From Orbicella franksi (taxonomy: Eukaryota): a stretch of DNA of 64,000 bases. Shown piece by piece: positions 12,784-64,000 of this stretch. Made by a program: the position numbers and the translations under genes. The stretch spans positions 24,304,001 to 24,368,000 of the forward strand of contig OZ116699.1 of NCBI GenBank assembly GCA_964199315.1, read 5' to 3'. Position 1 is the stretch's first letter, and each line of letters begins with the position of its first letter. Under the pieces are notes generated by a model. It ran no database searches, was not told the origin of the DNA, and was given only the letters and a program-made list of their open reading frames with translations.

Positions 12784-13440
12784 CTAAACATCAATATATT
12801 TACTGAGTTTCCGTTTCTTTCATCCCAAGTTAAATCTGATTGTGTTTAGTTCTGTGAACAAGGGGGGTGGAGTCATAGGTGTAAAATGCTTAGTGGTCAT
12901 GAATTCGTAATATCCTAGCAACTGTTGGAGAATAAAGGAACAAGTGTAGTACAGTCTAGGGTTGGGATGGATTATCATTCTTAGCGATAAAATGAAAAGC
13001 AGATATTTGAGAAGGGCGAAGACAGAAACAACAATACCAATGTCCAACTTTCGTTTAAAAGAAAACTTTCCAAGACTTTGCGCTAGCCTTACGTGTTCCT
13101 GACTTTTTGGTAACATTTCTCACGTGTCTGAAGAGTGTGGTGCTTTTGCAATCATTTACTCCCCATCTCGGGTTTCCCACCTAACGTAATCAATAAGGAG
13201 ACATTTATCATGCCATGAAATGTCTTTGAAAATGTCGATGCAGTCCCCGTGCTCACGGAAGCTTGTACCGAGCGCGTGTGAACAGTTTTCCCGACCTGCT
13301 CACATTAACCCGTCCGATCCTACAAAAATGCCCGCTAATCTCCCTATATTGTTTTCTTTACATTTAGCACAGCGGTACGTTTTTAACGGTATTAAGAAAG
13401 ACCGCTGATCTTTGTTCTTTTTGTACCATTTTTTCTTTAG

Positions 13441-13835
13441 GAAACTATTCATTGTTTGCTGTGTTTGGAGCCGTGTTTACCAATTTAATTGAAAAGCTAA
13501 TGAAAAGACTGGTGTCCGGAATTCCAGACAAGATTAAATTTGTTGTGGGGAGCTCGATCCAAGTCAGTGTCCCAGAATATTCAGAGAGTCTCGTGGTGAT
13601 CGCTCGTGACGAATACAAGATCCTTGAATCTCAGATGCTGAATATTCTGAACAAGCGCTGGCAGACGCTGGACCTGATATCAATGATGGAAGAGTTAAAA
13701 AGGTGTGTGGATAAAGAGTTTAACGGGCCTGGGTATTGGGGCCTATGGTTCGATCTTCAAGAGCTATTAGTAAAAGACCGTTTGTCGTCTCGTCCAAGAT
13801 TTAAAAGGGAAGAGGATCTCATTGACAGTGCGTAA
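13441..13835 (+). CDS. Orphan terminal exon encoding the C-terminal half of a degenerate caspase-like domain
   Basis: Strong acceptor ttttttctttag|GA AAC TAT TCA TTG (phase 1), open to TAA at 13835. SLFAVFG, KIKFVVGSS, ESLVVIA and TLDLISMMEELKRCV line up by eye with caspase LSHG, FFIQACRG, DFL-AYS and DL-DILT-VN elements, without the catalytic His and Cys. No upstream plus-strand exon was found. Confidence 0.5.
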
Positions 13836-14475
13836 GTTAATTGTCTTGATAGTTCTATATCTCACACTGTTCCAAGTGATCTTATGAGTGGAAATTCCTG
13901 GTTTTCAAAAAACCAAACAAAGAACCAAATAAAATATCGTAGATAGCTTAGATTATTGAATTCTTAAACCATTCGCACTCAGATAAATAGCCTTATAAGG
14001 TATGATACATCATGTACAGTAAAAGGTGTGGATAGTTAACATTCTTAACTCTTCCGCCTGACCGAGAGACACCTTGTCGGTCTAACTCTTAGTTATAACA
14101 ACTCGATGCCAAAAGTCTGAACATTACATTCACACTCTCCCTCATGCTTTGGGCACCTGAGTCCGCCATTGAGTACTTGGTTCTGACATGAAGCTCGAAA
14201 CATTTAGCTTTTGTGAAATTATAGTTGATATTAACTGTAAAGACTTAGCTCATGATAGACTGTCACACAGAAGAAAAAAGGCTCAGAATCATTTTCTTGT
14301 ATCCAGGATTTTGAAAAGTTTTATAAGATGATGTAATTTACTAGCTCTTCAGTAGTGTATTTATTGGTGTAAAGTCTCGAAGTGGCCAATGATACCTTAG
14401 GCGGTGTAGGAGGGGATGAGTGGAGTCACGGAAAACCTGATAGCTGAGAATTGGCCAGAAAATGTCTGTACTTAA

Positions 14476-14767
14476 GGCCCCGTTCACACTTCTTCGGAGA
14501 AATTTAAAAACGCAACAATCACCGGTTATTTTATATTTGTGTTTGAGGAAAACTCGACCAGGGAAATCACATGACTATCTTGTCGTCATCGCGTGTTCAT
14601 AATGTTTTACTTCCACACTAAAACGCAAACCTTGATTTTCATATTCCTCCGGTTTGAAGAACGTTTTGAAAAGCTCTCTTTGGGTGACGGATTAGTGTGG
14701 ACTGTAGGGCTAACTGTAGAAGTAAAGTTGCGTTTTCAAACATCTCCGGCGTAGTGTGGACGAGACC
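14476..14767 (+). mobile_element. Complete PIF/Harbinger-type MITE with TAA target-site duplication
   Basis: TIRs ggccccgttcacact / agtgtggacgagacc, flanked by TAA at 14473-14475 and 14768-14770. Confidence 0.88.
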
Positions 14768-16071
14768 TAATATAATGCACGGCATATTGTATTGTTTTCT
14801 TGTGCGGCAACAGACTGGTGATGTGTTTGATATGACTTACAACACGCTTTTGAAATGACATTGTCCCGGATGATCGTGTTTTATATGTACTGCTGTGAGT
14901 TTGCTAATATTATCTTGCAAAATAAAGAAGAAAACGCCAAGGATGATGAAACGAAAACAAACACAAACAAACCAACCAAAACGAAATTTTCCACCAGCCT
15001 GTCAATTTTGATCTCTGGCAATCCTGTCACAAAATCAAAATGATGAACTGTTATCCACTTCCATACTTGAGATGCTGCACTTCTTTCCTCAAAAGCTGGT
15101 TCTTTTCAATTTTACTGTGTAGGATCTCTTTATCCAATTTATTTGTAACATTGGTAGCATTTGGCAATGTGATATCGATATTAAAAAAGGCCAACTTTCG
15201 ATAATCATGAGGGACACTGTGCCTTTAATTGTCAATTTTAGGTCCAGTATCGCAAAATTTAGTTAGTTAGTTATTTCTTCTATTTCATTTAGTTAGTTAT
15301 TTGCTATTAGGCGCATGGAGTTGAGAAAAGTGCCCTTTAAAAATGTAAATTATTATTATTACAGTACTATTAAAATAATACTTCGTTCACTTGAAGCGAT
15401 TGACAAAACGTAAGCTTCGTTCTCTAAAATATCACTTAATTAATCAAGTATGCTAGAGGAATACACTTAGAGATGAAAGATAAGAAACTTAAGATAATTT
15501 CTCTTTGAATAAAATCTCCGTTTTATCTATTTGTGCAGTTATTACTAAAAAGTGACCTCCCGGAGGAAAACAAAACAGACAAAAAAAAAAAGCACGGATC
15601 ACAAGTTTAGGTTATATTGCCCCCGCCGGCCACCACTAACAAGAAACGAAACACTGTCGTCACTTGCAGTGCTCAATGATTCCTTAGCTCTTCAATGTGA
15701 CTTCTTTAACATTTCTCGTCTGGTTTGCTACTTTGGTAATCACTGACGTATTTAGAACTTACTGGAGCGAGTGTTATCTACAATCCAAACCAGTAAATTT
15801 GAATAGCTGTAATAGGAACCTTCACAAAATAAAGTTTAATTTAATTTTGTACCGTAAACCTCGTCTAACTACGACCAAATTATCGAAAACTCAGGTGTTT
15901 TTGTTTTGTTTTTACAACTGAATAAACAGAAAAATAATTGATCACACCTGCGATAGGTTCTCATGGCAGACTCTGAACAAGCTGCGAGTTCATTTCCTAT
16001 CTGTTTCTAAAGCTTGAAAATGAACGCCTTTTCTTATGTAAAAACAACATCATAAAAGTGTCCATCAAGAT

Positions 16072-16997
16072 TTATAGCATCCATGTATTCATGTCATCTT
16101 GAAGGGTTAAATGTTCCCGAAAACACGTCAGAGCTAGGTCGTCAACAATAATAGTGCGTTCAATTTCTTCACAAATAGCCATTCTTCGCTCGGGGTGAGT
16201 GTTGCGATAGCAGTGATAAAAATGGTGGTCTAACGCCTCGTAAAAACTCCCTCGAACACGCACATCTGTCTCTTCGACAGGGCCTGTTTTTTCCCTGGAA
16301 GCGCGTTTATTACCATTTGCTTTCCTTTGAACTTCAAACGTGGCGATGTAAGACGTTATGTCAGTGTTTCCAGTCTTTTTAGGATCGATTTTTTCCCCAT
16401 TAATATCTCTCAGGTCCATCATTTTCTCTCTTTCCGTGAACGTGCGCAACTGATCCAGGCGTTGTTCGAAGGAAAGCAGCTCTTCATAGGATATTTGACC
16501 ATCACCGTGTAGATACTCCTTACACGGTTTCAGCCGTCTGCGAAGTAACTGCACAGGTCGTCGGAGCATCTTGGCGGCAATGGGTTTATCTTTAGTAATC
16601 GCGTTCTTAGGCGAATCACCTTCGCGGCATATTGACCCGATTCTGTGCATGCCGGAATAAACGTGTGTTTCTTCCTGACTTTGTGCGTCCTCATTCCATC
16701 TTTCAAGAGAGAGCAAGTTCCTTGCTTTGTAGCGACTTGTAATGGTGGAAAATTCTTGTCGATTGCTACGCAACATTTGTAGGACTCGTTTTTCTGTTCT
16801 GTCTCTTGAAGAGATGAAGGCGTTTGACTTATCATATTTGGACGCCTTTCAAGACGAAGAAGCTTTAAAAACCTCAGCGGGGAATTGTCATCTTCAGTGT
16901 TCGGGTCTTGAGCAATGTTGCATCCCGGTATTCTTCGAATCGGCGGTAATGTCATCTGGTTCGAAAGCTCCGCATTTGGCCTATTATTATGTGCCAT
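16072..16997 (-). CDS. Orphan family copy 2, one frameshift near 16705 (young pseudogene or sequence error)
   Basis: N-terminal frame MAHNNRPNAELSNQMTLPPIRR...KQGTCSL (in ORF 16530-17042) and C-terminal frame ERWNED...LQDDMNTWML (ORF 16072-16776) overlap. There are 2 extra bases relative to copy 1 (tctctcTTgaaag vs tctctcgaaag). An acceptor atatactag lies just upstream of the ATG. Confidence 0.7.
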
Positions 16998-19037: not shown

Positions 19038-20006
19038 ATGGCGAATAGATATTTGACAAACGGAGCACAAACGGGTCAAGCAAGATTGCCACCGATTAGA
19101 AGAAAGTACGGCTCCATTAACAATCCGATATTTCAGGATTTTAGACGTGACAGTTTGCCGTCAAGTCTTCCAAGACTCCCTCAAGTGGAGAACCGACGGC
19201 TTCTTGCAGCGAAGACGTCTTCGTTCCTCCCTCAAGAGAGAAAAATCAGTTCTTTCTTCACAGATGACAAGAAGCTTCCTCCATTGAGACGCGTCGCTAC
19301 AGAGCCCAGAAATGCGTTGAAAAGGTCGACTGAGTCAAGAGGGCTGAATGGAGAGCAGAAAGCTATTGCCGGTTCTGGCTTACGTTCGGTGGATGATATA
19401 TATCTCGATGACGATCAGGCTAAGAACGGGACATTTAAAGATGAAGCCTTTGCTGAGAACACCGGGCCATTTCGAAGGCCCGCGCAGTTACTGCGAAGAC
19501 GGCTAAGACCCAGCAGAGCGTACATGTGCCAACACAGTGATGGCCAAATTTCCCATGGAGAACTGCTTAGGCTCGATCAAAACATGGATCAACTGTGTGC
19601 TATTGCGGAAAGGGACCAAGTCATAGAAGTTAGAGATATTAACGGAGAGAAGATCGAGCCTAGGAAGACTGAAAACTGCGATATCACATCTTACATGGGG
19701 ATGTTTGCAGTTGAAAGCAAAGCGGATAGTAGTAGCAGCGAGGACGGCAAGTGCGCTTCAACGGTCAAAACAGATCATAACACTGGCCTGCCTCGAGTAA
19801 GTGAAGAAACAAAGAAGCGTGTGAGAGGTCGTTTTTATGAGGCCCTAGATCTCCATTTTTATCATAACTATCGTAACGCGCATCCCGAGCGTAGAATGGC
19901 TATTTGTGAAGAAATCGAACGCAATATCGTTGTCGATAACATTACGCTGTCGTGGTTCAGAGAAAATTTGCGACTTCAAGACGTTTTGAATATTTGGATG
20001 CTATGA
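19038..20006 (+). CDS. Orphan family copy 3, intact 322-aa protein of unknown function
   Basis: Uninterrupted single-exon ORF. Conserved blocks shared with copies 1 and 2: LPPIRR, RRPAQLLRRRL, DGQIS-ELL, DINGEKI, RVRG-FYEALD-HFYH-YRN-HPERRMAICEEIER, WML*. A 5' UTR acceptor (attgatag) precedes the ATG. Confidence 0.85.
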   Translation: MANRYLTNGAQTGQARLPPIRRKYGSINNPIFQDFRRDSLPSSLPRLPQVENRRLLAAKTSSFLPQERKISSFFTDDKKLPPLRRVATEPRNALKRSTESRGLNGEQKAIAGSGLRSVDDIYLDDDQAKNGTFKDEAFAENTGPFRRPAQLLRRRLRPSRAYMCQHSDGQISHGELLRLDQNMDQLCAIAERDQVIEVRDINGEKIEPRKTENCDITSYMGMFAVESKADSSSSEDGKCASTVKTDHNTGLPRVSEETKKRVRGRFYEALDLHFYHNYRNAHPERRMAICEEIERNIVVDNITLSWFRENLRLQDVLNIWML

Positions 20007-36178: not shown

Positions 36179-37645
36179 TTAATACATTTTAACAAATTCA
36201 CTATAGTCAATCTCTCCATCTCCATCCACGTCAAGCATTTCAACTAGTTTGTCAAGGTAAAAGTTACTCATTACTTTCAACCGTTTCATTCCGTCAACGA
36301 ATTCCACCCGAGACAAACTGTCCCGGAATTGGCATTCGGGATCTAAACGTTTAAACAAATCTGAGGCGTGAATCTTGTTTTTGTCCAAATATATTTTAAG
36401 GAAATCAAACGGATCTGCCTCCTTTTTCTTGGTAACAAACAAGTCTGTCTTTTTGCATCCATGATGGACAACAAGACCTGTTCTTTTTTTCAGAACTTTT
36501 TCAAGATGAACTTCACAATCGTGATCCAACTTAATGTCTAAAATCTTCAAGACTTTCAATGCTGGAGCACCGCTCTTAAGCAACATCTCTAGTATCTTGT
36601 TGACGCCTTGACAAGCATTGAAAATCAAATTGTGGTTTAGATTCAGCACTTCCAATTTTTCGCTACCCTCGAGCCCCTTTGCGATGTTTTTAAGTCCTTC
36701 GTCCGAGAGTCGATTGTTGCTAAGATTGAGCTCTTTGATCGTTGAATTTCGTTTCAAAGACTCCCCCAACTCTGTAGTACCAATGTAATCAAATCCGTTC
36801 CAAGAAAGATCCAACTTTTCCAGCGAGTCATTATACCGCAGGCTCTTAGCAATGGCCTCAGCTCCTTTCCTTCTTATATGGTTCCAGCTGAAATTCAGTT
36901 CGAGAAGCGAATTGTTGTAAGTAAGAGCAGTTCCGAAAGAAACTCCTGAGGCTTCAGAAAATTTGTTGTTACTCAAGTTCAACCAATCCAAAGAGCTATT
37001 GTTCTCGACGCCCTCGGCCAATAGCACCGCGTCTTTGTCTCCTAGTCCGTTTCCGGACAGATCTAACCTTCTAATCACTGTGTTATTTGGCAGCGCTTCT
37101 GCTATGGCGATGATACCTTCCCTTTTGATATTGTTATTTGCCAAGTTCAGCTCAGTAAGAGCTCTGTTCTTTGACAGCACTTGTCCAATGTAAATTCCTC
37201 CCTTGGTATTGAGCTCGTTAAACGCCACGTGCAACTTTGACGTCGTCTTGTTTCTGAGGAGAACGGAGGCAATCGCTTTAGTTCCCGCTTCCTTGAGAAA
37301 ACGATGGTTAATCTTGATCTCTTCCTGACCAATCTCGTTCCCAAATCGAGACACTGGGGTGACTCCTACTGTGTCACAAATCTTAAGGTAGGTTTCTTTT
37401 TCTGAATGGGCCTCGTCATCATCATTGTTATCATCATCGGAATAGTCATCGTCTTCAAGGTCTGTATCCCAATGAGAGCTGGTAAAGGACTGCGTTTCCT
37501 CTTCCTCTTTGACCCTCTTTTCAGTTTTAAGAAGAGCAAGGGTGGAATCTACTTGCTTTATTGTGCTCGAGGCACTGGAACAGGCTGAGCGTAAGTTCTG
37601 TGTTTGATTGTTAGAATGATTATCGGTAGAATGTCGTCGTGGCAT
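36179..37645 (-). CDS. LRRC74: LRRC74-like protein (RNI-type LRR array plus C-terminal EF-hand pair), 488 aa, single coding exon
   Basis: Uninterrupted ORF with an acidic N-terminal patch and about nine 28-residue LRRs (LTELNLANNNI, IRRLDLSGNGL, LDWLNLSNNKF, LLELNFSWNHI, LEKLDLSWNGF, IKELNLSNNRL). EF-hand loop DVDGDGEIDYSE near the C-terminus. A 5' UTR acceptor (ttactttcag) lies 9 nt before the ATG. A versus B paralog cannot be resolved. Confidence 0.85.
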   Translation of the reverse strand: MPRRHSTDNHSNNQTQNLRSACSSASSTIKQVDSTLALLKTEKRVKEEEETQSFTSSHWDTDLEDDDYSDDDNNDDDEAHSEKETYLKICDTVGVTPVSRFGNEIGQEEIKINHRFLKEAGTKAIASVLLRNKTTSKLHVAFNELNTKGGIYIGQVLSKNRALTELNLANNNIKREGIIAIAEALPNNTVIRRLDLSGNGLGDKDAVLLAEGVENNSSLDWLNLSNNKFSEASGVSFGTALTYNNSLLELNFSWNHIRRKGAEAIAKSLRYNDSLEKLDLSWNGFDYIGTTELGESLKRNSTIKELNLSNNRLSDEGLKNIAKGLEGSEKLEVLNLNHNLIFNACQGVNKILEMLLKSGAPALKVLKILDIKLDHDCEVHLEKVLKKRTGLVVHHGCKKTDLFVTKKKEADPFDFLKIYLDKNKIHASDLFKRLDPECQFRDSLSRVEFVDGMKRLKVMSNFYLDKLVEMLDVDGDGEIDYSEFVKMY

Positions 37646-40052: not shown

Positions 40053-43000
40053 TTAAGTTAACGTATTTTCTTTTTGCTTTCTTCTGTGTTTCCTTGCAGT
40101 TGGTTTGTCAATACGATATCTCTTATCTTCTCCAGTGGCTTGCGCTGCCCTTGCCCCTTCCGCAGTCTTGGCCTCAACGGTGATTGGTCCGAACCCTACG
40201 GGTGAGTTAATAAGCGTCTGTCCGTCAGAGCTAGGAACTTCCTCTGTGGAGTACGATCCTTCCTGGGTAATTCCTTCGTGTCCTATAACTTCTGGATGAA
40301 TTCCGTCGAGGTCTTCATCCTCTCTGAAGTTGTGTAACCGCCTTCGGTATTGAGGTCTGTGAAGAATACGCCTTGTGTAGGTCGGGTAACCAAGTCTGAG
40401 AGGATGGCGAAAAAGAGATCTGTCTTGAAGTAAACCCGGGGATGAAAAGCTTGCAAATGAGTTCAAATCATTTCCTGGACGAGAAAACGCGTTTGAAACC
40501 AGTGGCGAGATAAAACTTGAAGGAGCTAAAGATGATGACATCATAGATGATGCCAGTGGTGATGTCATCCGCTGCGATACCGCCGGCGATGACCTTTCGG
40601 CCAAGTTGGTACCCAGGTTAGCCATGGGTGTCACCAGAGATGACGTCATATAGCGGAGTGGTGTTGAGTCCAAGGAGAGAATATTTCCCAGTGACTGAGG
40701 TCCTGCCATGCTTACCTGCTGTTGTACGCCTGACGGCTGCATGCCCACCTGTTGCTCCATGCCTACAGGCTGCATCCCTAATGACTGACGTGTAAACGGC
40801 TGCTCCTGTAATAGTTGCTGCTGAAGTTGTAGCTGACGTAACTGCAACGGTTGTGGCGGTAAGACTTGCTGAGTGAACGTTGTTTGTAATGGCTGTAGTT
40901 GCTGTAGCGATTCCAGGGTTGGTGTCAGCACCAGCTGTCGTTTGTAATTTTGAGACACGTCGTCTTGTAATAAGTCGTCCACACTGTTTGAATCTTCAGC
41001 GGCTAGAATTGGCTCAACTAGAGTTTGTCGCTTGACTTTCCTTTTGTCTTTAAAGTGCTCTTGCTGGTGTTGTTTCTTGGCTTTCTTTTCTGAGGATCCA
41101 GGGACCTTGGATCTGCTCACCACTGGAGACCGTCGCATTAACGAGGAAAGGTCGACATACCGCGCCAAGGGTTGTTGACCAATCAACGACCCCCCTGTAG
41201 AAAAGAATTATATATTACTTTTATAAGGAAATGTACTGAGATATTCATAATCGCCCAATGGTTTATTTACTGACATAAAGAACTGTGCTCAATGCCCGTA
41301 TCTCGTTTTCTTTAACGAACAATGGGCTTAAAATTGAATTGATATGCGGAAATTGTTGATTCTTTCAATCATTTAGCTGATTCTTTCAATGTTACTAGAG
41401 GAGGGATGTAAATTTTATACTCGCTTTCTCTCTCAACCCCATAACGTTTTCCTATTTCATAGTCCTCCTCGCCCTGAGTTTAATTTCATCTTCGCTTCCA
41501 CTAGCGGCTTTCGGCTTTCTATAAAGAAAACCACGGTGCTGATTGACTATCGAAGCGTATCAGCCGATCACTCATAGCTTCGCAATGTTTCCATATAGTT
41601 ATCTTGAGGAAATCTAACGTAGCCATCACTTGTTGGCAATAAATGTTCTCATAGAATATATTAGGTAATTTTGATTCCCGTCATTCGGGTCACGTGATGA
41701 ACACTTAGTAGATAATTCTCGCGCGACGATCCCTTTTGTGCACCAGTGATGACACGGTAGTCACGTGTTCCACAACAATGAAAATGTTGAAAAGCTTATC
41801 CAACCACACAACGAATGAATGGAATTGAAGGCGTTATGTTTGAGGTCAAGGTTACAGGTAAGTCTCACTCGTTTTAAGGAAAATGATAAACGCATGAGAG
41901 ACATCAACAATTAATACTGACTGGATTTACAATTTATCAAAAAATGGGGTTCTTTCCAGGAGCTATGAATTGCTTATATTTCATTTTGTAAGCTCTGACA
42001 ATATTTACATGAGTCAAAATTCAACAAAAGCTGCACTGTATATAAGTTCAGTTTCTGGCAAACATACCAAGTAATCCATTGGTAAGGGGAAGAGAACTCT
42101 GTGCGCTGTATGGCTGAGCCAATGGCGAAGGGATGTACGTTCTTCCATAACCCATCATAGCACCTCCATACTGTGTTGCTCCTAGGTAAGATGGTACCAA
42201 ACCCAGAGCACTCCCTTCTGCATTCACACCTGGTGTGCCTAACGCATTACCATAATCCAAGTCTCGCAATGAATTCAAATTTCTTTGTCTTAAGAGCGAG
42301 TTATATAGAGATGTTAGGCCATTCAACTCACTGTAGAGCCTCTGATAGCCTCGTAAGATATCAGAATTATCTCGGTGTCTTGAGGAACCTTGTGAAGGTA
42401 AAATACTTCTTGACAGACCTGACTCTTGTAGACTTTGTTGGGGGGTGAGCTGTGAGGGTAGTGCAAATAACCCTGCTGTTTGAGGACTTTGTCGGGCACC
42501 GTAAGCTCCAAGTCCTGAACCAAACAGAGCATACTGAGGTAAGGCACCATATCCGTAACTTCCGTAAGCATTTAGGCCTCCTGGAGAAGACAGCAACGAC
42601 GGTTGTACAAACTTAGGAACCGCAGAGATAAATTGACGCTTCCGAGATTTGGAGCCCCTCTTGTGATCACTTGTACGCGGAATATCCGACTTGTGTGTTC
42701 TGACTCCGGTTTCATCTTTGCTCGGTCTGGGAAACCTTTGTCGCTTTACCCCGTTGTAAAACCAGTCGTGACCGAACGGACCGAACGGTAAGTGGTATCC
42801 ACTATGGTAAAACATAGCTGGATGATGATGAATGACCGGAGGAGGAGCATAGTGCTGCGCGAGGTGAATTGCTGGGTGAAATATTGGAATCGCTGGGGTG
42901 CCAGGCTTTGCCACAACTTGAAGAGACGCTGGTTTGGCGTTGACTTTCACTCCAGCAGGGTTGGCATTCACTTCAATCTCTGCGGCTTTGTCGTCGACTT

Positions 43001-43142
43001 GAAAATGCGACGGTTCACCAGATTGAGTCACTGTTCCACCATCTTCAGGAAAAGGTCTTGGTCTAACGCGTCCATTAAAAGCGAACAAACAAAGAATACA
43101 CACTGTTACCCGAAATCCATCGCCAAAACAAAACCATATCAT
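40053..43142 (-). CDS. Secreted low-complexity polyprotein A, about 738 aa; exons 42068-43142 and 40053-41194
   Basis: Donor CTT G|gtatgt at 42068 and acceptor ttttctacag|GG GGG TCG at 41194 are both phase 1. There is a hydrophobic N-terminal segment (FRVTVCILCLFAF) and four KR|Q sites (KRQRF, KRQFI, KRQTL, KRQLV). His/Pro-, Gly/Tyr-, Gln- and Ser/Met-rich blocks follow. No Cys after the N-terminus. Confidence 0.8.
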
Positions 43143-46525: not shown

Positions 46526-48526
46526 TTATTGTCCTGGTCGCGGAATCTCTGTTTTCTTGACAATGGCTGCATTTCTTCCACTGTCAAGGGGATTTCTTGT
46601 GAGGTAGCCTCTGGTTATCTTTCTAAGCCGTCCAGGGATGAAAGAACGGGGAACAGTCGACCTAGCCTCTTCTCCACCGAGACCGCCCGCCATTGGTGAA
46701 CCCATCGATCCACCAAGACCCGCAAGACCACCAGGAAGCTCCTCAGGAGCCGGCTGTCCACCAAGACCACCTAGACCTCCAGCGTCAGAAAAGCTGTTGG
46801 CCCCCATGGGGGAACCTTCGTTCCCACCAAGGCCTGCTGCACCTCCGAGACTTGCTCCCGCAAGGCCAGCAAGGCTATCAGCACCAGGACCCATTTCTCC
46901 TCCTTGTCCGCCTTCTGAGAACGAGCTTGGGTTGAATCCCTCCCCGAAGGCTTTCGCAGAAAGATCGCCGAAAGCTTCACCTGGATTACCACCTTCCAAA
47001 GGGCTGCCATGACCAGCAGCCAAATCGCCTAATCCTGCAGGACTTGCCCCTCCGTGTTCGTTTGGATGAACAAATATTACTGAGTCACCATTGGGTCCAG
47101 AGTTAGCGTTGGAGAACATTTGACGCCTTAGCCTTGTGGAAGCTTCCTCAATGGATCTTGTACTGACTTGCTTATCTTCCTCTGCTTTTGGCGTCTCACC
47201 ACTATCTTCTTGTGAATCTCCACTTGATTCCTCTGTCGCTGTTTGCCCTGCTTCTGTATTTGCAGTAGGTTGCGTTACATCTGTTGCCTCTTTTTGCGGC
47301 TTTTCGTCCTCGTACTCTGCTTCTTTATCTCCACTACTCTGCTCAGCTTCATCCTTGACAGTCTCCGCGGAGCTCTCTTTTTTAGAGTCCACAGCCTTAG
47401 CTATCTTTGATCGCTTCTTCCATCCACCATAAGGGTGCACAATATGAGGCTGGTGAATGACAATTGGAGGACGATGATAGATTGTAGGTGGAGAGGTGAC
47501 ATGCACAGCTGGGAAGTGATTTCCAGCGTTTATGATAGGCACAGGAGGCCCAAGATGGACAGCGGGAACATGGGGACGTACATGAATGGCTGGGACATGA
47601 GATGGGACATTTATAACTGGAACATGTGGACCAATATGGACTGCAGGTACGTGAGGCCCAATATGAACCGGAGGATAATGTGGACCAACGTGAATGGGTG
47701 GAGTGTGAGGTCCTACATTCACTGTGTGGGGAAATGGATGCCAACCAAACCACTGACGTTTGACTTTCTGTGCTACGATTTCGCGTTTTGATTTCCCTTT
47801 ATGCTTATGAGATTCACTCTCGTCTCTTTCAGAATCATCATCACTATCATCATCGTCCTCTTCTGCATTTTCAGGTATTGTGGAGCGTCCAAAGTAACCG
47901 GGTCCCCCAGCAAACCCACCAAAGCCTCCATAGCCTCCATAGCCTCCATAGCCTCCAAACCCACCATATCCGCCAAAGCCTGCGGGATATTGAAAGTGTG
48001 GTTGATGGAAAACAATTGGTGGTTGATGATATACTGTCGATGGCGACATAACGTGCACCGGCGGACCGGTGAGCGCATTAACGGCGTGAACGGGCGGCGT
48101 CATATGAACAAAAGGCACATGTGGCCTGACGTGTAGAAGGGGTGCGTTTGTTCCATAGTGAAGACTTGGAACTCGAGGACTAAGATGAACAGCGGGCACA
48201 TGTGGTCCAATGTGAACCGGAGGTGCGTTTGGTCCAATATTCACGGGCGGACTATGCGGGCCCAACACTGCCGTGTGCTCGTATGGATGAAAACCTTGTA
48301 AATGAGGGTAAGCAATAACTTGAAGCTTTGAAGGTTTGGCTTGAACTTTTACTCCTTCGGGATCAGCATTCACAACCAACTCCGGCGGTTTTTCATGAAC
48401 AGTGTAACGAACGGCATTTTTCCTTGGGCTTCGTTTACTTTTTGCACCTTTCGTTAAAACGCCGGTTGAAAAACATAACAATACTACCCCTAGCAGACAT
48501 AGCCATAATCCCCGAAAGGCCGCCAT
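46526..48526 (-). CDS. Secreted His/Pro/Val- and Gly-rich polyprotein B, 666 aa, single coding exon
   Basis: ATG at 48526 gives MAAFRGLWLCLLGVVLLCFSTGVLT, a classical signal peptide. It has two GPHVPAVHI-type nonapeptide arrays, a GGY/GGF tract, acidic spacers and a Gly/Ala/Leu-rich block. Sites KR|QWFG and RR|QMFS. Confidence 0.88.
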   Translation of the reverse strand: MAAFRGLWLCLLGVVLLCFSTGVLTKGAKSKRSPRKNAVRYTVHEKPPELVVNADPEGVKVQAKPSKLQVIAYPHLQGFHPYEHTAVLGPHSPPVNIGPNAPPVHIGPHVPAVHLSPRVPSLHYGTNAPLLHVRPHVPFVHMTPPVHAVNALTGPPVHVMSPSTVYHQPPIVFHQPHFQYPAGFGGYGGFGGYGGYGGYGGFGGFAGGPGYFGRSTIPENAEEDDDDSDDDSERDESESHKHKGKSKREIVAQKVKRQWFGWHPFPHTVNVGPHTPPIHVGPHYPPVHIGPHVPAVHIGPHVPVINVPSHVPAIHVRPHVPAVHLGPPVPIINAGNHFPAVHVTSPPTIYHRPPIVIHQPHIVHPYGGWKKRSKIAKAVDSKKESSAETVKDEAEQSSGDKEAEYEDEKPQKEATDVTQPTANTEAGQTATEESSGDSQEDSGETPKAEEDKQVSTRSIEEASTRLRRQMFSNANSGPNGDSVIFVHPNEHGGASPAGLGDLAAGHGSPLEGGNPGEAFGDLSAKAFGEGFNPSSFSEGGQGGEMGPGADSLAGLAGASLGGAAGLGGNEGSPMGANSFSDAGGLGGLGGQPAPEELPGGLAGLGGSMGSPMAGGLGGEEARSTVPRSFIPGRLRKITRGYLTRNPLDSGRNAAIVKKTEIPRPGQ

Positions 48527-50001
48527 ATCGGGGAAAAGTAAACTTGTAAACAAATACGGCCTTGCAGATTCTGTTTAAGCGCAATAAGTCAAAACACAAG
48601 AGATCTGTCGATGGTCTTAGTGGTCAAACCGAGATTACTTCACTCCCAGGGAATTTTTTGCTATGATTTAATCTTTTATCATCTCATCGCACGTGGCAAT
48701 TAGTTTTCACGGATCAATAGCAGTTTATGGCAGCGTCACATCATACAATAAAACCACCGGCGGTTATTTTCAAATAGCAGGTTTATTTAGGAATATGCTA
48801 TTCTTACTGGAAGAATGGTGTTCACGCTAATCAACGAACAAAAAATAGATTAATAAATTTTTCACAGGACGTTTTCCCAGATTGACTTCCGTGTAACTAC
48901 GAGTGTAAAAACCAGGTTAATTACACCAAAAACATAGAATGTTCACGCTTTTTATCTGGCCAGTAGTAAATTGGTTAACATCCTGGCAAGTGATAACTTT
49001 CATTAAAGACGACAGTGACAGATTTATAGATCTCTTCCACTCTCCGCGATGTGCGTTAAAATAATTAAAAGTTGTCCAACCTTATCTCCTAATACGTCTC
49101 AAACAAAATCTGCTGATAAAACTCTGTGCTCGTGCAAGTTAACCTAGACATTGAACTAACATCAATAGCTTCTTGCATGGTTCATTATCCACAAACAATT
49201 GAAGACCAAACAATTCAATTTCGTGTTGATGTTTTTCTTTTCCGAGTTGTTGTGACTACTGAAGCGAATTTCTGTGGAGAATAGCAAAACTGGAAACGAT
49301 ATCGTTCATTACAAATAGAAAATACGTCCACACTTTTAAACGAACAAAGTTAACAACCAAGGTCACCTTGTATTTCGTTCCGAGCACGAAATAACGGCAA
49401 ACACCGAGTAATAATATTAAAAAAAAAAAAAACACAAGAAAAACGAATTAAAAAAGGCAAAGTTGTCACCACAAAATTTATGTACCAAACATTAGAGCTA
49501 AAATCAACGAAATTGCTTCTCTTAGAAACATAATGCAGGAATATCTTAACAGTAATTGGTCTTCTAATTTCCAGATTACAAAACAAAGAAATAACACAAG
49601 GATAGGCACAGTCGCTTGTGAAACATACCTGTCGCTTCAAAACGATTTCACAAAATGACCGTTTTAAATACATTTCTTAAATCAGCAAACATCACATAAA
49701 GGCAAATTATCATAATTGTTTTTTTATTGGTTTTCTGTGAAAGTTTAGACGAATCGCGATAAATACAAGACATAAAGGGACAAACAATAATACACAGGTA
49801 CCAACAACCATTAAATTTTAAATCTTCTATTGCGAGAAACAAAGTTCTTCCCGGTGAATTGCTTTAGTAAGGGGAACACAATTGAAAGGATTAAGTGTCC
49901 AAACTGTTTGTTTTTAAAAGAAGAAAACATTGAACTGTAGAACCCGATTGAACAGAAGACAATCATCTTGGAGACAGTTAGCTACTGCCCCCTACTCTTG
50001 A

Positions 50002-57003: not shown

Positions 57004-59249
57004 GGTAGGTCCAGTGAGATTCCGGTTCTAATTGGCTTTGGAAACAATAGAATGAGACTGGAACCAATTGGTTGATATATAGTTAATATGCTTAGAGATC
57101 ATGGCCTGTTCTAGGCATTCGGTTAGTATTAAGGACCGCTCATCTTTTTCTGTAGCGATCGTAGTGATCATGTGGAAACATGGAACAGGCTTATCCTCTG
57201 AGGGAGAGAAGAAAAAAAAGACGTAAGCAGCAAAAGAACTTTAGATGATTGAGAAGATCGGCGGTGGTAGCGATCAGTGATTAGAGGGAAACAGGTAGGC
57301 GTAAGGGTCGCTCAATGCTTTTTATAGAGATCTTAGCGATCATATGAAAACCGGCCTTTCCGCCCTTTAAGGAGCGACCAGTTGGTACGCAAAAACAGCG
57401 TATTGATCAGACGTCAAACATGCATGGCAAATACTCATATCCATCATCACTACATGTAACCATAAAGACATTAAACCCCAACACTCAATCCATTTTCAGC
57501 TATTGTAAGAACAGAACGAGACCAACTAAGAAAACAAAACTGGGTTTTCATTTTCCATGCAGTTACTTCGATGCTTAACTCGATGAAGTTCCTTCATCAA
57601 GTTAAACATCGAAAAGGAGGAAATCAGGACAGTAAGCAAAGCTTCTAAGCAAAGCTTCTAAGTCTCAAACAGACTGATATGGAGCACGGCTGAAAAATCT
57701 GTAAGAGGTCACACAAGCAGATAAGCTAGCGGTACAAAATAATTAAAATTCAATTTTTATTGTCACAATTGTCTCTAAAATGGCTCAAAACTTCATCAAA
57801 GTGTTTTATTCATAGAAAATGTTTTTGATGTTTCATATCGCGTTTATCATATACGTTATCGTTCTGTGGACTTAGGAGCCAGTAAAAACTCAAAGAGATC
57901 TCACTCATGCAAATTTGACGCAACTCCAGGTAACGTTCTGTCTAACCTTGGATAACAAACTGGATATAAACAATTATTTTAGCTCCTAGATAGCAGCAAT
58001 CTTTGAGATATATTCACTTATATTATAAAAGCCAATTTGCATGGGACAATGCCGTTTGCTTTTGTTGCAGGACACAAGCCCATTAAGGAAAAACATGTAT
58101 GATGTTAGCCTGATGATTGTAACAATAATTGAAATCGCTGTATATCCGTAGACGAGACATGGCTAAAAACAAAATCAGACCGTGCTTTTCCCTTGGGTTT
58201 GTTCCAGGGAATTAATGGATTGTTTTATGCAAATTGGCTCTTAAAGAAAAATTCCTGTGTCCACTGATTCGTATTCAGTGGGCAGTTATAATACTAATCC
58301 TAGAAACTGATTTCGCTTCAATATCTATCCGCTTTCTTAGAAAGAATAACTTGCACTACCATTGAAATAGATCCGTTTTGTTCACTGTTCGGTAGTATGA
58401 TCGACAGAAACACGAATACCCCATGTCGATTGGGCCATGGTCATCATTTCGTGGTTCATAAGAAGATGGATAAGTTTGAATCATTCGTTCAATTTAATGT
58501 ATTTAAGGTCAAGCCATGTTCTGCTACACGCAACGCTGCTTCAGCTAATTTTAGCCACTTTCAGACGAAAAGAGAATATATTTTGCAACGGGCGTTGAAT
58601 CATCACGAGGGTGTTGCAAGTATCTACAAAATTCCATGCCTAAGTAGGCTTCACAACCCCATTCCGTTTTGTTCTTTTACTCCTCTCGATAACGTATGTT
58701 GTGCAAAACCACATCAGGCCCTAAAGTGAAGAAGCAAAGAGATTTCCTGTTAAATTACGGAGGAACAACGTTCCCAAATAGAACATAATGACAATTAATT
58801 ATAACCGTTTAGTAAGCCCTGTTGTCTGACTAACCCCGCCCTTGTATATCGATTCAATCGAGGTTTATTTTACTTGCTTTGAGCAATCTCTTGATTAATC
58901 AACCTTAACTATACTAATATCTGAAGATAGAGGGAAATATTACTTACATCTTCAGATCGATACCAATTAATTACTTTCCTTATAGTACTTTTAAAATTCT
59001 TTTTTTTTCCATTACGATACACGTTTAAACGAAGTAGTTGCCGCGCAACTACTTAATCGTTTTATTGATTAGTTAATTAATTTGATATATGCACTTGCGT
59101 GTGATTAATGTATTATTCCGTTTATTGTTACTCTTTACTAATCACCACCTCAGTTATTCTAAACGTGAACGTCCAGTCAGTACACTAGTAATGCTAGAGA
59201 CAATCGTTGAACATGTCATCATACCTCGAGCACTATTTTCACTCCCGGC

Positions 59250-62200
59250 CTAGCCACGATTGGCTGAGCCATTCGCGTGCTGCGTGGAGTGGTGTTCCCT
59301 TACAGGAACGTTGGACCTTGACGTTTCCACATTAACATGCACCGATGGTTTATCCTCTTCTGGTTCAGGAAACAAGCTGGGTTGGGCTGGAATCGGTGCG
59401 ATATTAGGAACCGGTGCGATATTAGGAACTGGCATAGGAATAACTGGTGGAAGCATGGGTGCTAACGGTGGTGGGGCCTGTTGCGGCTCTGGTGTGGGTT
59501 CTTGCAGTGCTGGAGGTTCTACCACGGGTGGAACTGCCATAGGGGGTGCGAAAGGAAGTATTGGAAACATTCGTGGAGCTAAAAGAAGTGGGTTCCCCTG
59601 AGGAAGCGGTGCAGCGGGCAAAGGTAAATTTCTCAAAAAGGCCCTATTGATTGCAGGCAGAGGTAGAATAGCTGGTCCAGTTGAAGGTAGGTCTGATAGT
59701 GGGATATTGGTTGCACCCTCTCGTTCTAGTGTATCCAGTTGTGGTCCAGCTATACCACTAGGTGGACGAAATAAAGGCTCACTGGTCACTCCAGGTTCCT
59801 GTGCCAACGGGGGAGCTGTCTCTGCTGGACTGTCTTGAAGTATAGCTTGTGCACCTAAATCTGAAGGAAGCGTGCCTTCTAAGGGGTTGGCGGCTCCTTT
59901 AAGCGGCAGAGCTCCAACTCCAGTAGGACTGTCAAGTCGTATTCCTCCGAGCTTTGGTCTCTTTCTTCCAGCAGCTCCACCTGCAACTAGGTTTGAAATC
60001 GGATCTGTGAAGACTTCAACGGGCTTGTTAAGGTTGTTACCCAAACCAAACAAGTTCTCCTCGCGTGGTTTTTTTAAGGGTTCTGGGACGAACTTTGGAC
60101 CTCGTCTTCTTTCAATAACGCCGCCTCCAAGAAGATCAAACTGCCTTTTAAATTTCTTTGTTTCGTGATTTTTTCCAGTTGCCAGATGAGATCTTGGCAT
60201 GTTAGTTTCAAGTTCATGACTGTGAAACTTTCTTTCTGGGTTTGGCACGAGTGATTTAGCCGTTTGTACATTTATGCTCACGTGAGGACGTTGAAATGTA
60301 TTAATTGGGCTAACAGAGGATTCTTGAGGTTGAGTGGTTAACACCGAACCTTGCTGATTTTCCTCAGTTTGGGCCAGGTATGGTTGAGAAGCCTCTTGGT
60401 CGTTTGTTTGCGTCAAGGAGGCTTGCGGAAGGTTCATTTGTGTTAGCTGTGCACCGGCATCCTGTTGAAAGGCTTGAATGGGCTGTATTGAAGCCTGTTC
60501 TTGTTGAGGTTCACTGATACTTTGCAAAGACTGTGTGGGCAGAATTTGTTGTTCCTGTTGACCTCCTAGATAATTATATAGCTGACGTTTCCAAGTACGC
60601 TTGTCTTTTCTACCCGCTTGAATGCGATTTTCTTTTATGATTTTCCCTTTTGTGGACTGTGGAACAGTTGATCTTCCATTTTCCTTACTAACGCTACCAG
60701 TCACAGCTGTCTGCCCTAGTGAACTAAGAAGAGGAACGGTTCCAAACAATTGGCGTCTCGATTTTCGCTCTGGTGTCTGTTCCTTATGATGGCCAAAGCT
60801 CTTTCCACGATCATTATTTGTAGATATCAGAGATTTCGCTGTCTGAACACTAATGCTCACTTTCGGTTGTGTTTTGTGTTCTAGAGGTAGCGTAAGTGTT
60901 TGAAACGGTTGAATTTGCTGCTGTTGCATAGGTTGTACAAATGCAAGTGGCTGCTCCTGTTGCGGTTGCGGTTGCTCTTGCTCTTGCTCTTGCTCTTGTT
61001 GTTGTTCAAGCGATTCAGATTGAGGTTGTGGTAGCATGGAAACCTGCTGGACACCTTGTTCGTTTTCTTCTTGGTTTTCACCCGTCAGGAATTGAGTATT
61101 TTGAATAGGATTGCCTTGAATTGTATTTGATCCTTCGTTAAATGGAACCGTAAACTGCCTTTTTACTGTAGTTCTAATCTTTTTCTTAGACGTAGTGCCT
61201 GAAATATCATGTTTCTTTCTGGCTACATCGACCTTAACAGATACGCGAGGTCTTTGGTCTCCGAGCAGAGTACCTGTGTTGGCGACAGTTTCTGGTTCAT
61301 TCACATCGGGCTCATAGTCTTCAGGTTCTTGCTCAAGTTGGTGAAGTTGCGGCATGCTGCGTTTCAAAGAATTAGTTTTGATAGTGCCAGCTTTCCGTTT
61401 ATCATTTGATCTTTTAGATGCTTCCACTTGAACGGAAACATGTGGGCGTTCATAATCAATCTGGCTTACACCTGCCTGAGAGGGCACTGCATCTGAAGGT
61501 AGTTCTTGTGCCTGTTGCTGTTGAAGTGTTGCAGGATTTGAATTAATAGCTGCCGTTGATAACTGATCTAGTTGAGGTTCCTCTTGAACGTGGATAGGAG
61601 ACTGTGAGAAACTACCTTGTGCTGGTTCATCGGATTGTAGTGGTTCTTGATCGTTGATCGTTGCAATGGGTTCCTGAGCCTGTTCGAAAGGCTGTGCAGG
61701 AGGTGCCTGTACACCGAATACTTGACGTTTACTGATCAAATCATGCGAGCCTTCTTCATCCGAGCGCTTAGACGCCTCAACATTGACAGAAACGCGGGGA
61801 GTGTGCACTGAGCTAGGCAAATATTCAAGGGCCTGACCTTGATTGATTGCCGGGAAAGGTAACCCTTCATGCGGTAGTTCCGACAGGCCGTAAATTTGTC
61901 TCCTTTCCTTTTTGATCGGTTCGTTTTGGCTCATTAGTTTATTCTTCTTTTTGGCAGTTTCTACGTGGACTGACACACGGGGTCGCTCATTTTTTGAAGG
62001 GACCTGTGAAAGTAGAGGTGGACTGACAACTGGAAGGGGAATCATGTGCGGAAGCTGTTCCATTCCATATACTTGTCTTTTTGATTTCGAGTTCTCCTTT
62101 GCTTCAAGTTTTTCAACAAAGCTGGGCAACCTCCGCTTTACGCTTGTAGACGATAAAGGTCCGTGACGTTTTCTTCCTGGGAATGCAGACTTTCTCTTGC

Positions 62201-64000
62201 TTACATCCACATTTACTGAAACTCGGGGTCTTTGATTGACAGCTGGTTGAAGAGCCAATGGATACGGCTGAACGGCCAACGGTGATTGCGGTACTGCGTA
62301 GAATTGGCGTTTCTTTGCATTTTCCTTTTGTTTCATTTCTGAGGATTGGCCGAGTTTGCTTCTTAGACCAGTCTGCCTCTTGTCACCCATTTTTGGAATT
62401 TTGTATTTTCTTTGTCGCTGTAGCTCTTCTAATAACATGCCATTAGCCTTGATTCTATGATTTACAGGTAAGGTGTTGAACGCTGGCATCAAAATGCCAT
62501 TCTGCTTGAAAGTCTGCGGGAGAACTTGCATAGCTGGAAATCGTGTTAACAGTGAGATGCTTTGGCGCTTGTTGTGGTCTTTTTCCACCGCTGATTTTTT
62601 TGTAGTTTGCACGTTGATAGATACACGGGGATTGTTGTTGCTTGGCATCGGGGCAGCTCCGTTGTAAGGAATAGGAATTCCATAGGCGGGGATTAAACCT
62701 TGTGTTGAAGCGACAAACTGTCGTTTATGGAGTGTGTTTTTTACCTTTTTAGAATGTTTCTTTGGCACCGTTGATTTTGCCGCGACATTGACATTAATGG
62801 TAGTATGTTTTGGTTGTTCCTCTTCAGTTTGTATTGCTTGCTGGGGAACTGATTGCTCAGACACTGGGAGAACTGAAGCTCCCGGAAGGCCACTAGAGAT
62901 CATACCTTGAAAAGGAACTGCAACTTGTGGTTGGAAAGGTGCCTGCAAAGGTGCCTGCATAGGTGCCTGCAAGGGTGCCTGCAAAGGTGCCTGCAAAGGT
63001 TGTTGTATTGGTGCTCGCAATGGTACATTACCTCCACGAAAAGCAAGTTGCTGTGCTTGAGCCGGTATCATCATTGGTTGGCCTTGAGATGGTGATATTT
63101 GCTGAACTGAATTTTGTTGTAGCTCCTGCCTTTGACCAACCATTTCCGGATACTGTTGCTGCTGGGCAGCCTCGTTCTGACCTTGGAGCTGCTCGTTATC
63201 GTTTGACGCAGCTCCCTCCTCACGTGGTGCTTCTTCGCTTGTAGCAACAAATTGATTCTCTGGTGCATTTGAAAAATCGGGGTTAACTTGGTTTTGGTTA
63301 ATTTCCTGACCATTCTCTCCACCTCCTATAAGTTCGTCCCTTTTATCACCAGTTTTATGCTCCTCAAGATGCTTAGTATAACCTACTTTTGGAGACCTCC
63401 TTTCTTTTGTCATTGAAGGTATCCCATTCTTCTTTGCTGTCTCTACGTTAATGTTGATTCGAGGAGAGTTCCGATGGAAAGGGAACCCTTGTACACCATA
63501 ATTTAAAGCTGTGGGCAAGGTATAGTGACTTGTTAGTGCTGAATGCGGTAAGTAATTATATATTTGTCGTTTGAAAATACGTGGTCGGGAAAGAACATCT
63601 TGCTTGTTCTCCATTTTAGTGGCTTTGGGTATATGTGATTTTGATGCTTGTACGTCTACGTGGACTTTAGGTTTGTGATCGCTGTGATAAAGAGGATATC
63701 CAAGGAAGTTACGATAAAGTGCACTTAAGTAAGACGCCCATGGGTTAAGCGTCGGTGACTCACTGCCATCGTCTTCTGGTAATGTGCTAAATAGGTTGTG
63801 GATGGGTTGTGTAGGGAGATGAAATAAGGGAAGCGCTTCAGGGTAACTTGCATCGTCGGGTTCAGTTTCCTGAGGATGTGGCAAAGGTGGAAAGAAAAAA
63901 CGTGGCAGAGGTGAGTAAGGCGAGTACGGAAGAAAGTTATTCATTATCCTTGCTCCTTCTAATCCATGTAATCCCAGGGGAATGCCAGCAGAAATAGGTG
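59250..64000 (-). CDS. Giant low-complexity polyprotein C, more than 1580 aa, open at the window edge (N-terminus outside the window)
   Basis: The 1564-codon ORF continues without a stop to base 64000 (...PISAGIPLGLHGLEGARI-MNNF). It has 12 [KR]R|Q sites, 12 copies of a P-x-V-x-[VI]-x-V-[EQD]-x-x-[KR]-type motif, and Pro/Gln-rich module bodies. No Cys seen. Confidence 0.9.
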   Translation of the reverse strand, partial: PISAGIPLGLHGLEGARIMNNFLPYSPYSPLPRFFFPPLPHPQETEPDDASYPEALPLFHLPTQPIHNLFSTLPEDDGSESPTLNPWASYLSALYRNFLGYPLYHSDHKPKVHVDVQASKSHIPKATKMENKQDVLSRPRIFKRQIYNYLPHSALTSHYTLPTALNYGVQGFPFHRNSPRININVETAKKNGIPSMTKERRSPKVGYTKHLEEHKTGDKRDELIGGGENGQEINQNQVNPDFSNAPENQFVATSEEAPREEGAASNDNEQLQGQNEAAQQQQYPEMVGQRQELQQNSVQQISPSQGQPMMIPAQAQQLAFRGGNVPLRAPIQQPLQAPLQAPLQAPMQAPLQAPFQPQVAVPFQGMISSGLPGASVLPVSEQSVPQQAIQTEEEQPKHTTINVNVAAKSTVPKKHSKKVKNTLHKRQFVASTQGLIPAYGIPIPYNGAAPMPSNNNPRVSINVQTTKKSAVEKDHNKRQSISLLTRFPAMQVLPQTFKQNGILMPAFNTLPVNHRIKANGMLLEELQRQRKYKIPKMGDKRQTGLRSKLGQSSEMKQKENAKKRQFYAVPQSPLAVQPYPLALQPAVNQRPRVSVNVDVSKRKSAFPGRKRHGPLSSTSVKRRLPSFVEKLEAKENSKSKRQVYGMEQLPHMIPLPVVSPPLLSQVPSKNERPRVSVHVETAKKKNKLMSQNEPIKKERRQIYGLSELPHEGLPFPAINQGQALEYLPSSVHTPRVSVNVEASKRSDEEGSHDLISKRQVFGVQAPPAQPFEQAQEPIATINDQEPLQSDEPAQGSFSQSPIHVQEEPQLDQLSTAAINSNPATLQQQQAQELPSDAVPSQAGVSQIDYERPHVSVQVEASKRSNDKRKAGTIKTNSLKRSMPQLHQLEQEPEDYEPDVNEPETVANTGTLLGDQRPRVSVKVDVARKKHDISGTTSKKKIRTTVKRQFTVPFNEGSNTIQGNPIQNTQFLTGENQEENEQGVQQVSMLPQPQSESLEQQQEQEQEQEQPQPQQEQPLAFVQPMQQQQIQPFQTLTLPLEHKTQPKVSISVQTAKSLISTNNDRGKSFGHHKEQTPERKSRRQLFGTVPLLSSLGQTAVTGSVSKENGRSTVPQSTKGKIIKENRIQAGRKDKRTWKRQLYNYLGGQQEQQILPTQSLQSISEPQQEQASIQPIQAFQQDAGAQLTQMNLPQASLTQTNDQEASQPYLAQTEENQQGSVLTTQPQESSVSPINTFQRPHVSINVQTAKSLVPNPERKFHSHELETNMPRSHLATGKNHETKKFKRQFDLLGGGVIERRRGPKFVPEPLKKPREENLFGLGNNLNKPVEVFTDPISNLVAGGAAGRKRPKLGGIRLDSPTGVGALPLKGAANPLEGTLPSDLGAQAILQDSPAETAPPLAQEPGVTSEPLFRPPSGIAGPQLDTLEREGATNIPLSDLPSTGPAILPLPAINRAFLRNLPLPAAPLPQGNPLLLAPRMFPILPFAPPMAVPPVVEPPALQEPTPEPQQAPPPLAPMLPPVIPMPVPNIAPVPNIAPIPAQPSLFPEPEEDKPSVHVNVETSRSNVPVREHHSTQHANGSANRG

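Follow-up and report, generated by a model that had tools for sequence, protein, structure and literature searches.

A conserved amphipathic motif array in the C-terminal part of a giant, putatively secreted protein of corals and sea anemones

The locus and the extent of the gene

The window examined here is a 64,000-nucleotide stretch of the Orbicella franksi genome (assembly GCA_964199315.1, contig OZ116699.1, positions 24,304,001 to 24,368,000 of the forward strand), and the subject of this report is a minus-strand gene at its far end, whose product carries twelve copies of a short motif of alternating Val/Ile and polar residues. The original prediction regarded this product as a complete 'protein C' made of variable modules, each of them a disordered spacer with one C-terminal beta-strand 'sticker' and an adjacent basic linker. 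The open reading frame (ORF) at 59250..63944 (-) is uninterrupted, with its stop codon at 59250-59252 and 1,564 amino acids (aa) counted from the first ATG. Upstream of the ATG at 63944, the frame stays open to base 63998, by which a complete 1,564-aa protein starting at this codon is excluded; the ATG is internal and not the true start. Moreover, RNA contigs from four runs labelled coral match the ORF at 99% identity or above and extend 877 to 6,956 nt past base 64000, and the orthologs extend beyond this point as well. The interval 59250-64000 (-) encodes the last ~1,580 residues of a giant protein, and the notion of a self-contained protein C has to be abandoned. What the window itself holds on the N-terminal question is the open frame at its end and the contigs reaching up to 6,956 nt upstream, the His/Pro/Val-rich part of the protein lying outside it. 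The parts of the gene that fall within the window are as follows.

59250..64000 (-): last large coding exon of the giant secreted protein, cut by the window end (open frame, RNA contigs and ortholog lengths)
58720..59223 (-): intron of the 3' untranslated region (UTR), 504 nt, GT..AG, beginning 26 nt after the stop codon (spliced in contigs of four RNA runs)
58001-58719 and beyond (-): further 3' UTR (RNA contigs)

Contig word depth over the transcript, in itself a poor measure of expression, is 10-460 in RNA runs of 0.1-0.5 Gb and suggests that the transcript is abundant in adult coral. In a close relative (P0001/L002), two more motif copies precede the part that the window covers, so that the whole protein has about 14 copies, not 12.

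Twelve copies of an amphipathic motif

All 12 peptides on which the original prediction was built are found in the 1,564-aa ORF, and their positions, together with the extent to which each is retained in homologs, are listed below.

63624..63671 (-): motif 1, PKVHVDVQASK + SHIPK; position kept in all but the most distant of ten aligned homologs, including Nematostella and Actinostola
63417..63464 (-): motif 2, PRININVETAK + KNGIP; conserved among corals
62760..62804 (-): motif 3, degenerate copy TTINVNVAAK + STVPK; conserved in two relatives (P0001, P0002)
62583..62630 (-): motif 4, PRVSINVQTTK; from ORF scan and homolog alignment
62181..62228 (-): motif 5, PRVSVNVDVSK; conserved to Nematostella and Actinostola
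61935..61982 (-): motif 6, PRVSVHVETAK; from ORF scan and homolog alignment
61752..61799 (-): motif 7, PRVSVNVEASK; conserved to Nematostella
61398..61445 (-): motif 8, PHVSVQVEASK; from ORF scan and homolog alignment
61203..61250 (-): motif 9, PRVSVKVDVAR; its module is found in the closest relative only
60819..60866 (-): motif 10, PKVSISVQTAK + SLIST; conserved in all homologs, a strand in the AlphaFold model
60240..60287 (-): motif 11, PHVSINVQTAK + SLVPN; conserved in all homologs, a strand in the AlphaFold model
59301..59348 (-): motif 12, PSVHVNVETSR + SNVPV; ~20 residues from the C-terminus, the best conserved copy

The pattern P-x-[IV]-x-[IV]-x-[IV]-x-x-x-[KR] fits 11 of these motifs, the exception being TTINVNVAAK (62775-62804). 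When the residues of the ORF were shuffled 20,000 times, one or more matches to this pattern arose in 411 shuffles and more than two in none, with ~0.02 copies expected by chance. Because shuffled sequences so rarely reproduce the pattern, the motif array is not a by-product of composition, and a chance repeat is ruled out. The amphipathic beta pattern ascribed to the motifs also holds as a property of the sequence: among 180-degree hydrophobic moments computed over 7-residue windows, motifs take ranks 1-10 in the ORF protein, and all 12 fall within the top 15. Judged from these moments and from low-confidence structural models, the motifs have the strong beta propensity and the amphipathic or stacking pattern that are looked for in cross-beta structures and functional amyloids.

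Orthologs and architecture of the whole protein

A word-indexed search with the ORF yielded three relatives, at 86, 52 and 30% identity. When 1.84 billion representative proteins were searched with a profile, only 15 matched, with E values down to 1e-184 and lower, and among them were three full-length proteins of 5,019-5,811 aa in which the matching part is C-terminal. A second word-indexed search, for which one giant ortholog served as the query, added 16 more proteins of 4,548-6,329 aa. Named orthologs, all annotated as 'uncharacterized' or 'hypothetical', include the following.

Nematostella vectensis, LOC116618347: XP_032237783.2, 5,019 aa
Actinostola sp.: KAK3703960.1, 1,226 aa
Porites lutea: XP_073239155.1, 3,405 aa
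Stylophora pistillata: PFX26305.1, 6,136 aa
Pocillopora damicornis: RMX45029.1, 6,206 aa
Oculina patagonica: XP_078359399.1, 5,959 aa

In the word-indexed and profile searches, no match could be assigned to an organism outside stony corals and sea anemones; this 'Hexacorallia' range reaches as far as HMMER could see, and many matches come from metagenome assemblies that bear no organism label. Nematostella LOC116618347 and the coral orthologs resemble the window ORF in the motif array and its final PSVHVxVETS[KR]S copy, in the KR-Gln junctions and in the conserved blocks. The copies of the C-terminal P-x-V-x-V-x-V-x-T-x-K array, including this terminal one, align position by position with those of 10 homologs, by which the window ORF belongs to the family. 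The hexacoral giant proteins are a new, deeply conserved family, the function of which is inferred.

The full-length orthologs, ~5,000-6,300 aa long, begin with a hydrophobic leader resembling a signal peptide, followed by KPYxKQ, an acidic Ser/Thr-rich stretch and a triple 9-residue amphipathic cassette. A region of ~3,500 residues follows, made up of His/Pro/Val/Ile repeats (PPIIYHQPPVVVHRP type), basic linkers and Gly/Tyr/Trp blocks; the motif array is confined to the last ~1,500 residues. These proteins contain 0-7 cysteines and have an isoelectric point (pI) of 9.4-9.9. The two parts are connected in one gene on a distant coral contig (L001), where a canonical GT-AG phase-1 intron connects in frame a His/Pro/Val ORF of 2,061 aa with the motif ORF. 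A like adjacency exists in Actinostola: a 3,686-aa product is encoded on the strand of the motif-part gene, and its end lies 543 bases upstream of that gene.

On contig L001, the motif-part ORF is split over two overlapping frames (9051-10013 and 9899-15049), either because the long-read metagenome assembly contains an indel or because the frameshift is genuine, and its 305-aa piece bears an extra motif copy, PDVNVHVETTR.

Constraint on the motif

Of the conditions under which the original prediction was to fail, the one that can be computed, namely a motif no better conserved than its flanks, does not apply. Identity to a distant coral protein (P0003) is 66% in the motif, 32% in the module bodies and 25% in the basic linkers, and that to a nearer one (P0002) is 81, 52 and 45%, respectively. 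Against the 86%-identical relative, the ratio of nonsynonymous to synonymous substitution rates (dN/dS) is 0.11 for the motif, 0.27 for the module bodies and 0.45 for the basic linkers. In an 11-sequence alignment, copies 1, 5, 10, 11 and 12 are kept in position in both sea anemones, and copy 7 only as far as Nematostella. By these comparisons, no element of the protein tail is as constrained as the motif.

From 73 instances in 8 proteins, an extended consensus R-P-[RH]-V-[SN]-[VI]-N-V-[EQ]-T-[AS]-K-S-x-[IV]-P was derived. Since the search expression fixed only four of its positions, the bias at the remaining residues is real. On its Val/Ile face the element is invariant, and on its polar face it favours S/N, N and E/Q; as judged from the aligned copies, the polar face is under constraint too, and the K-S-x-[IV]-P tail is part of the element.

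Such constraint bears on a second reading, in which the motif would be a docking or recognition element, recognized through beta-strand addition by a processing protease, a chaperone, a sorting receptor of the secretory granule or cnidocyst vesicle, an enzyme modifying the invariant Lys, or another matrix component. With both strand faces and K-S-x-[IV]-P conserved, the element has a specificity that designed self-assembling peptides do not require, and it always stands directly upstream of a basic, presumably cleaved tail. In addition, a related [KR]-S-x-[VI] signature, recognized by eye, closes the N-terminal His/Pro/Val super-repeats and occurs in a neighbouring paralog, which suggests a family-wide boundary mark. 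On the other hand, at least 12 copies per chain beside long spacers are typical of a multivalent material protein and not of a sorting signal, the invariant hydrophobic face with Asn/Gln is a classic stacking pattern, and no partner is known. A docking role is regarded as doubtful.

Dibasic junctions and module layout

The ORF contains 12 [KR][KR]Q sites, which are listed here with the other features of the tail that lie between or beside the motifs.

60141..63572 (-): span of the 12 [KR][KR]-Gln junctions, with Gln followed by [LIFV][YF] (motif scan)
63572, 62726, 62570, 62381, 62312, 62081, 61904, 61730, 61163, 60758, 60590 and 60149 (-): first bases of the junctions (motif scan)
62394..62564 (-): conserved non-motif block of 57 residues (QSISLLTRFPAMQVLPQ...KYKIP) that starts at a KR|Q junction; many invariant columns, local model confidence (predicted local distance difference test, pLDDT) of 50-60 with one short helix
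59931..60143 (-): conserved non-motif block (QFDLLGGGVIERRRGPKF ... RPKLGGIRLD); invariant columns in alignments
59352..59624 (-): Pro-rich tail of ~90 residues upstream of the last motif; the equivalent part of one homolog (P0004) is about 25% Pro

Gln is the next residue at 12 of the 38 ends of dibasic runs in the ORF, against 11.6% expected (P about 1e-3), and the same enrichment is present in every ortholog tested (P 5e-5 to 9e-5 in four and about 0.01 in a fifth). The two residues after the junction Gln are mostly [FLIV][YF], and ~9 of the 12 KR-Gln-hydrophobic junctions hold their position as far as sea anemones. The tail thereby has what is sought in a convertase-processed polyprotein, that is, dibasic sites conserved in position at module boundaries.

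As a whole, the tail is laid out as ~13 modules, each consisting of a [KR]R-Gln-[LIFV]-[YF] start, a disordered body, the ~16-residue element and a Lys/Arg-rich tail. The bodies are Pro/Gln/Glu-rich and 26-265 residues long, with net charges of 0 to -14 and pI values of 4.1-5.5 in most and up to 8.6 in two short ones. The basic tails that follow the motifs comprise 11-40 residues and carry +2 to +10 in 10 of the 12 cases. In 7 of the 12 copies, a second basic residue immediately follows the motif; this could be an extra cut site that would leave the strand at the C-terminus of a fragment.

When the ORF is cut in silico at KR|Q, 13 mutually dissimilar pieces of 23-297 residues result. The proposed grammar of disordered spacer, strand and basic linker describes most of these pieces, but three have no motif (including the conserved 57-residue block at 62394-62564) and two have two. 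Similarly, the basic linker leads to the next KR|Q for most motifs as proposed, but for two of them the junction is KR|S or KR|D. The module bodies had been called unalignable, which proved too strong, as several non-motif blocks (residues 461-517, 1065-1078, 1121-1128 and 1268-1338) are conserved too.

Cationic linkers of 11-40 residues with basic sites on their flanks, within a polyprotein layout of a kind common for such peptides, raise the possibility that the linkers or other released pieces are antimicrobial or signaling peptides and that the strand is only a spacer or a processing mark. This is very improbable: the linkers show the lowest conservation and constraint of all parts (25% identity, dN/dS 0.45), the fragment sequences lack Gly-dibasic amidation signals at module ends, and a 6,000-residue His/Pro/Val-rich carrier is unexpected for a peptide precursor. 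A cnidarian neuropeptide precursor was likewise rejected, the KR|Q pieces being long (23-297 residues) and dissimilar, with ends that are not Gly-dibasic.

Structure prediction and known families

Residues 434-960 and 1000-1564 were modelled with AlphaFold2 from alignments of 10 and 11 sequences. Both models have a mean pLDDT of about 40 and a predicted template modelling score (pTM) of 0.15-0.17, which indicates disorder, and at this mean pLDDT there is no folded domain for structural comparison. The sole strands in the models are four motif copies (2 of 6 and 2 of 3 motifs in the modelled segments), which are paired with one another. This predicted pairing agrees with a sticker-and-spacer picture and, at such confidence, proves nothing.

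Pairing of motifs inside one chain, predicted at a pLDDT of about 40, would also suit a giant disordered scaffold that is never cut, in which strands pair within or between chains and the K/R-Gln junctions are Lys/Gln cross-link sites for transglutaminase or charge blocks for coacervation with polyanions. A Gln/Lys-rich protein with no Cys needs some cross-link other than disulfides, and acidic bodies do alternate with basic tails. Yet the junctions have, at conserved positions, the full [KR]-R / Gln-hydrophobic-aromatic form, which is the usual look of convertase sites that yield pyroglutamate ends in cnidarian secretory precursors, and transglutaminase sites are not known to require a dibasic pair. 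An uncut scaffold is judged improbable.

No Pfam family matched the window ORF at E values up to 1, nor did any match 4,400 and 3,900 residues of two orthologs (8,300 in total), and sequence-profile searches of the PDB with two alignments gave no match below E 0.5. In a search of the ESM Atlas by language-model features, for which 0.9 is the level of a trusted lead, the nearest proteins were enamelin, MEPE and casein, with scores of 0.55-0.66. Vertebrate enamelin, MEPE and caseins are likewise disordered secreted proteins rich in Pro and Gln, some of them subject to proteolytic processing; they have no motifs in common with the coral protein, and the likeness is compositional only. An enamelin-like member of the secretory calcium-binding phosphoproteins (SCPP) was accordingly rejected, with no Pfam Enamelin match and a feature score of 0.66 against the lead level of 0.9.

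One ortholog (P0063) has a Pfam Chorion_3 match of 29.2 bits (cut-off 22, E 8e-7) at residues 2344-2471, within the His/Pro/Val repeats that lie outside the window, and a weak match of the same repeats to Cuticle_3. Chorion_3, which covers the Drosophila eggshell proteins s36/s38, and Cuticle_3 likewise comprise secreted low-complexity structural proteins, and eggshell proteins are hardened by cross-linking. The Chorion_3 match is probably compositional; it lies outside the motif array, covers the profile in part and is absent from another ortholog. Membership of either family was rejected, given that neither the window ORF nor that other ortholog has a Pfam match.

Literature searches by gene and protein identifiers and by motif strings found no paper that names the protein. 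The identifiers are not mentioned in the main texts searched, and the protein is not named in the literature on coral skeletal matrix, nematocyst and spirocyst proteomes. The Stylophora identifiers are also absent from the supplements of the coral skeleton-proteome papers searched, and non-calcifying anemones possess orthologs. Taken jointly, these observations argue against a role specific to biomineral; a skeleton-specific role is unlikely.

A sticker-and-spacer interpretation

The favoured reading is a sticker-and-spacer protein with convertase cleavage, zipping of beta-strands and basic tails as solubilisers, which is plausible from the sequence at a rough probability of 0.45. The element would form an amphipathic beta-strand with a Val/Ile face and a Ser/Asn/Gln-Glu face, and this strand would serve as an intermolecular sticker, its zipping partners being strands of its own kind or the His/Pro/Val part of proteins of this family. 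Such zipping would cross-link the floppy spacers into an insoluble or gel-like material, either secreted or held in an organelle. Furin-type convertases in the secretory pathway would probably cut the KR-Gln junctions, and Gln exposed in this way would cyclise to pyroglutamate. Once separated by the cuts, the modules would also be rid of the basic tails, which are presumed to keep the precursor soluble. Both convertase cleavage and pyroglutamate capping are taken from the general look of cnidarian secretory precursors.

Comparable designs exist elsewhere. Squid suckerins and silks are sticker-and-spacer structural proteins with Pro-delimited beta-strands, and the coral protein resembles them in that short Pro-bounded, beta-forming blocks alternate with long amorphous spacers rich in Gly, Pro and Gln; the complete protein is also rich in His, as in that comparison, and its assembly would not use disulfides. 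It differs from them in having no sequence relationship and in that its strands are single 7-9-residue amphipathic units, 50-300 residues apart, which precede basic tails and dibasic sites, with beta-sheet being predicted only. As for processing, PMEL17 of melanosomes is a functional amyloid licensed by convertase, and profilaggrin and the nematode polyprotein antigens are convertase-cut polyproteins of structural or carrier type. In all of these, a secretory precursor is cut at basic sites into assembling or acting units, which is the logic of the original prediction. The coral protein has no homology to any of them, and its cleavage is only predicted. Unlike its dozen dispersed strands, PMEL17 has a single amyloid core besides folded domains.

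Conservation and module layout lend partial support to the copolymer as first proposed, but several points weigh against it. Cleavage, pyroglutamate formation, self-association and cross-beta structure are all predicted from sequence only. The conserved polar face (N at +3, E/Q at +5, T-[AS]-K-S-x-[IV]-P) would equally fit a specific recognition site, and the predicted strand pairing has little weight because the mean pLDDT is about 40 in both models. One sticker per fragment is not a strict rule, given the three motif-free and two double-motif KR|Q pieces. Finally, the identifiers are absent from the main texts and coral skeleton-proteome supplements searched.

Candidates for the material are a part of the cnidocyst, for example of spirocysts, which are hexacoral-specific, and a gland-cell secretion. 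The hexacoral-only range of the family makes the spirocyst guess tempting; staining of spirocysts with acid dyes, which would also speak for it, was not confirmed in the literature checked. In its fullest form, the sticker-and-spacer reading would have a ~6,000-residue precursor cut at KR-Gln into a dozen pyroglutamate-capped spacers, each ending in a common Asn/Val ladder strand, which once freed of their tails would co-assemble with the His/Pro/Val part into a hexacoral-specific cross-beta material such as a spirocyst thread or an adhesive secretion. This full version is considered unlikely.

The giant protein is among the longest in coral and sea-anemone genomes, appears to be well transcribed in adult coral and has been conserved since corals and sea anemones split, and yet it has no name, domain or paper. 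Its motif array offers an experimental handle in the form of a 16-residue peptide, predicted cut sites and, in the genetically tractable Nematostella, an ortholog. Should the sticker-and-spacer reading be true, reef builders would possess a new protein-material system that is disulfide-free, His-rich and possibly triggered by pH or cleavage, and a building block of a hexacoral-specific structure might be revealed. If it fails, the motif still deserves an explanation, as a recognition site under strong constraint in a major secretory product.

Neighbouring genes in the window

Among further ORFs of the window, the one at 46526-48553 (-) encodes two arrays of His/Pro/Val nonapeptides (GPHVPAVHI type) besides a signal-like leader. 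Its ~110-residue array, which follows a KRQW junction, is near-identical in the coral, Actinostola (QZH41_003850) and Nematostella (the neighbouring paralog LOC5512467) and is conserved far more than the motif protein. The gene has neither a Pfam family nor a paper. Two other ORFs, 42048-43142 and 40053-41186 (-), are probably one gene; KR-Gln sites are present, and a cassette, HFQVDDK..EIEVNANPAGVKVNAKPASLQVV, is common to this gene and to residues 395-432 of the giant orthologs (54% identity over 65 aa). In an Actinostola gene model, the counterparts of this gene and of the 46526-48553 gene are joined in one product.

Pfam searches of the neighbouring ORFs matched only LRR and EF-hand, both in an unrelated neighbour. 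This is a single-exon ORF of 488 aa at 36179-37645 (-) with leucine-rich repeats (LRR_6, E 7e-26) and a C-terminal EF-hand, and it appears unrelated to the polyprotein cluster. Toward the other end of the window, two divergently oriented ORFs at 16072-16776 (-) and 19038-20006 (+), the latter with no Pfam match, have a clearly similar C-terminal region of ~170 residues (RRP.QLLRRRL ... RMAICEEIER ... WML) and look like a pair of paralogs.

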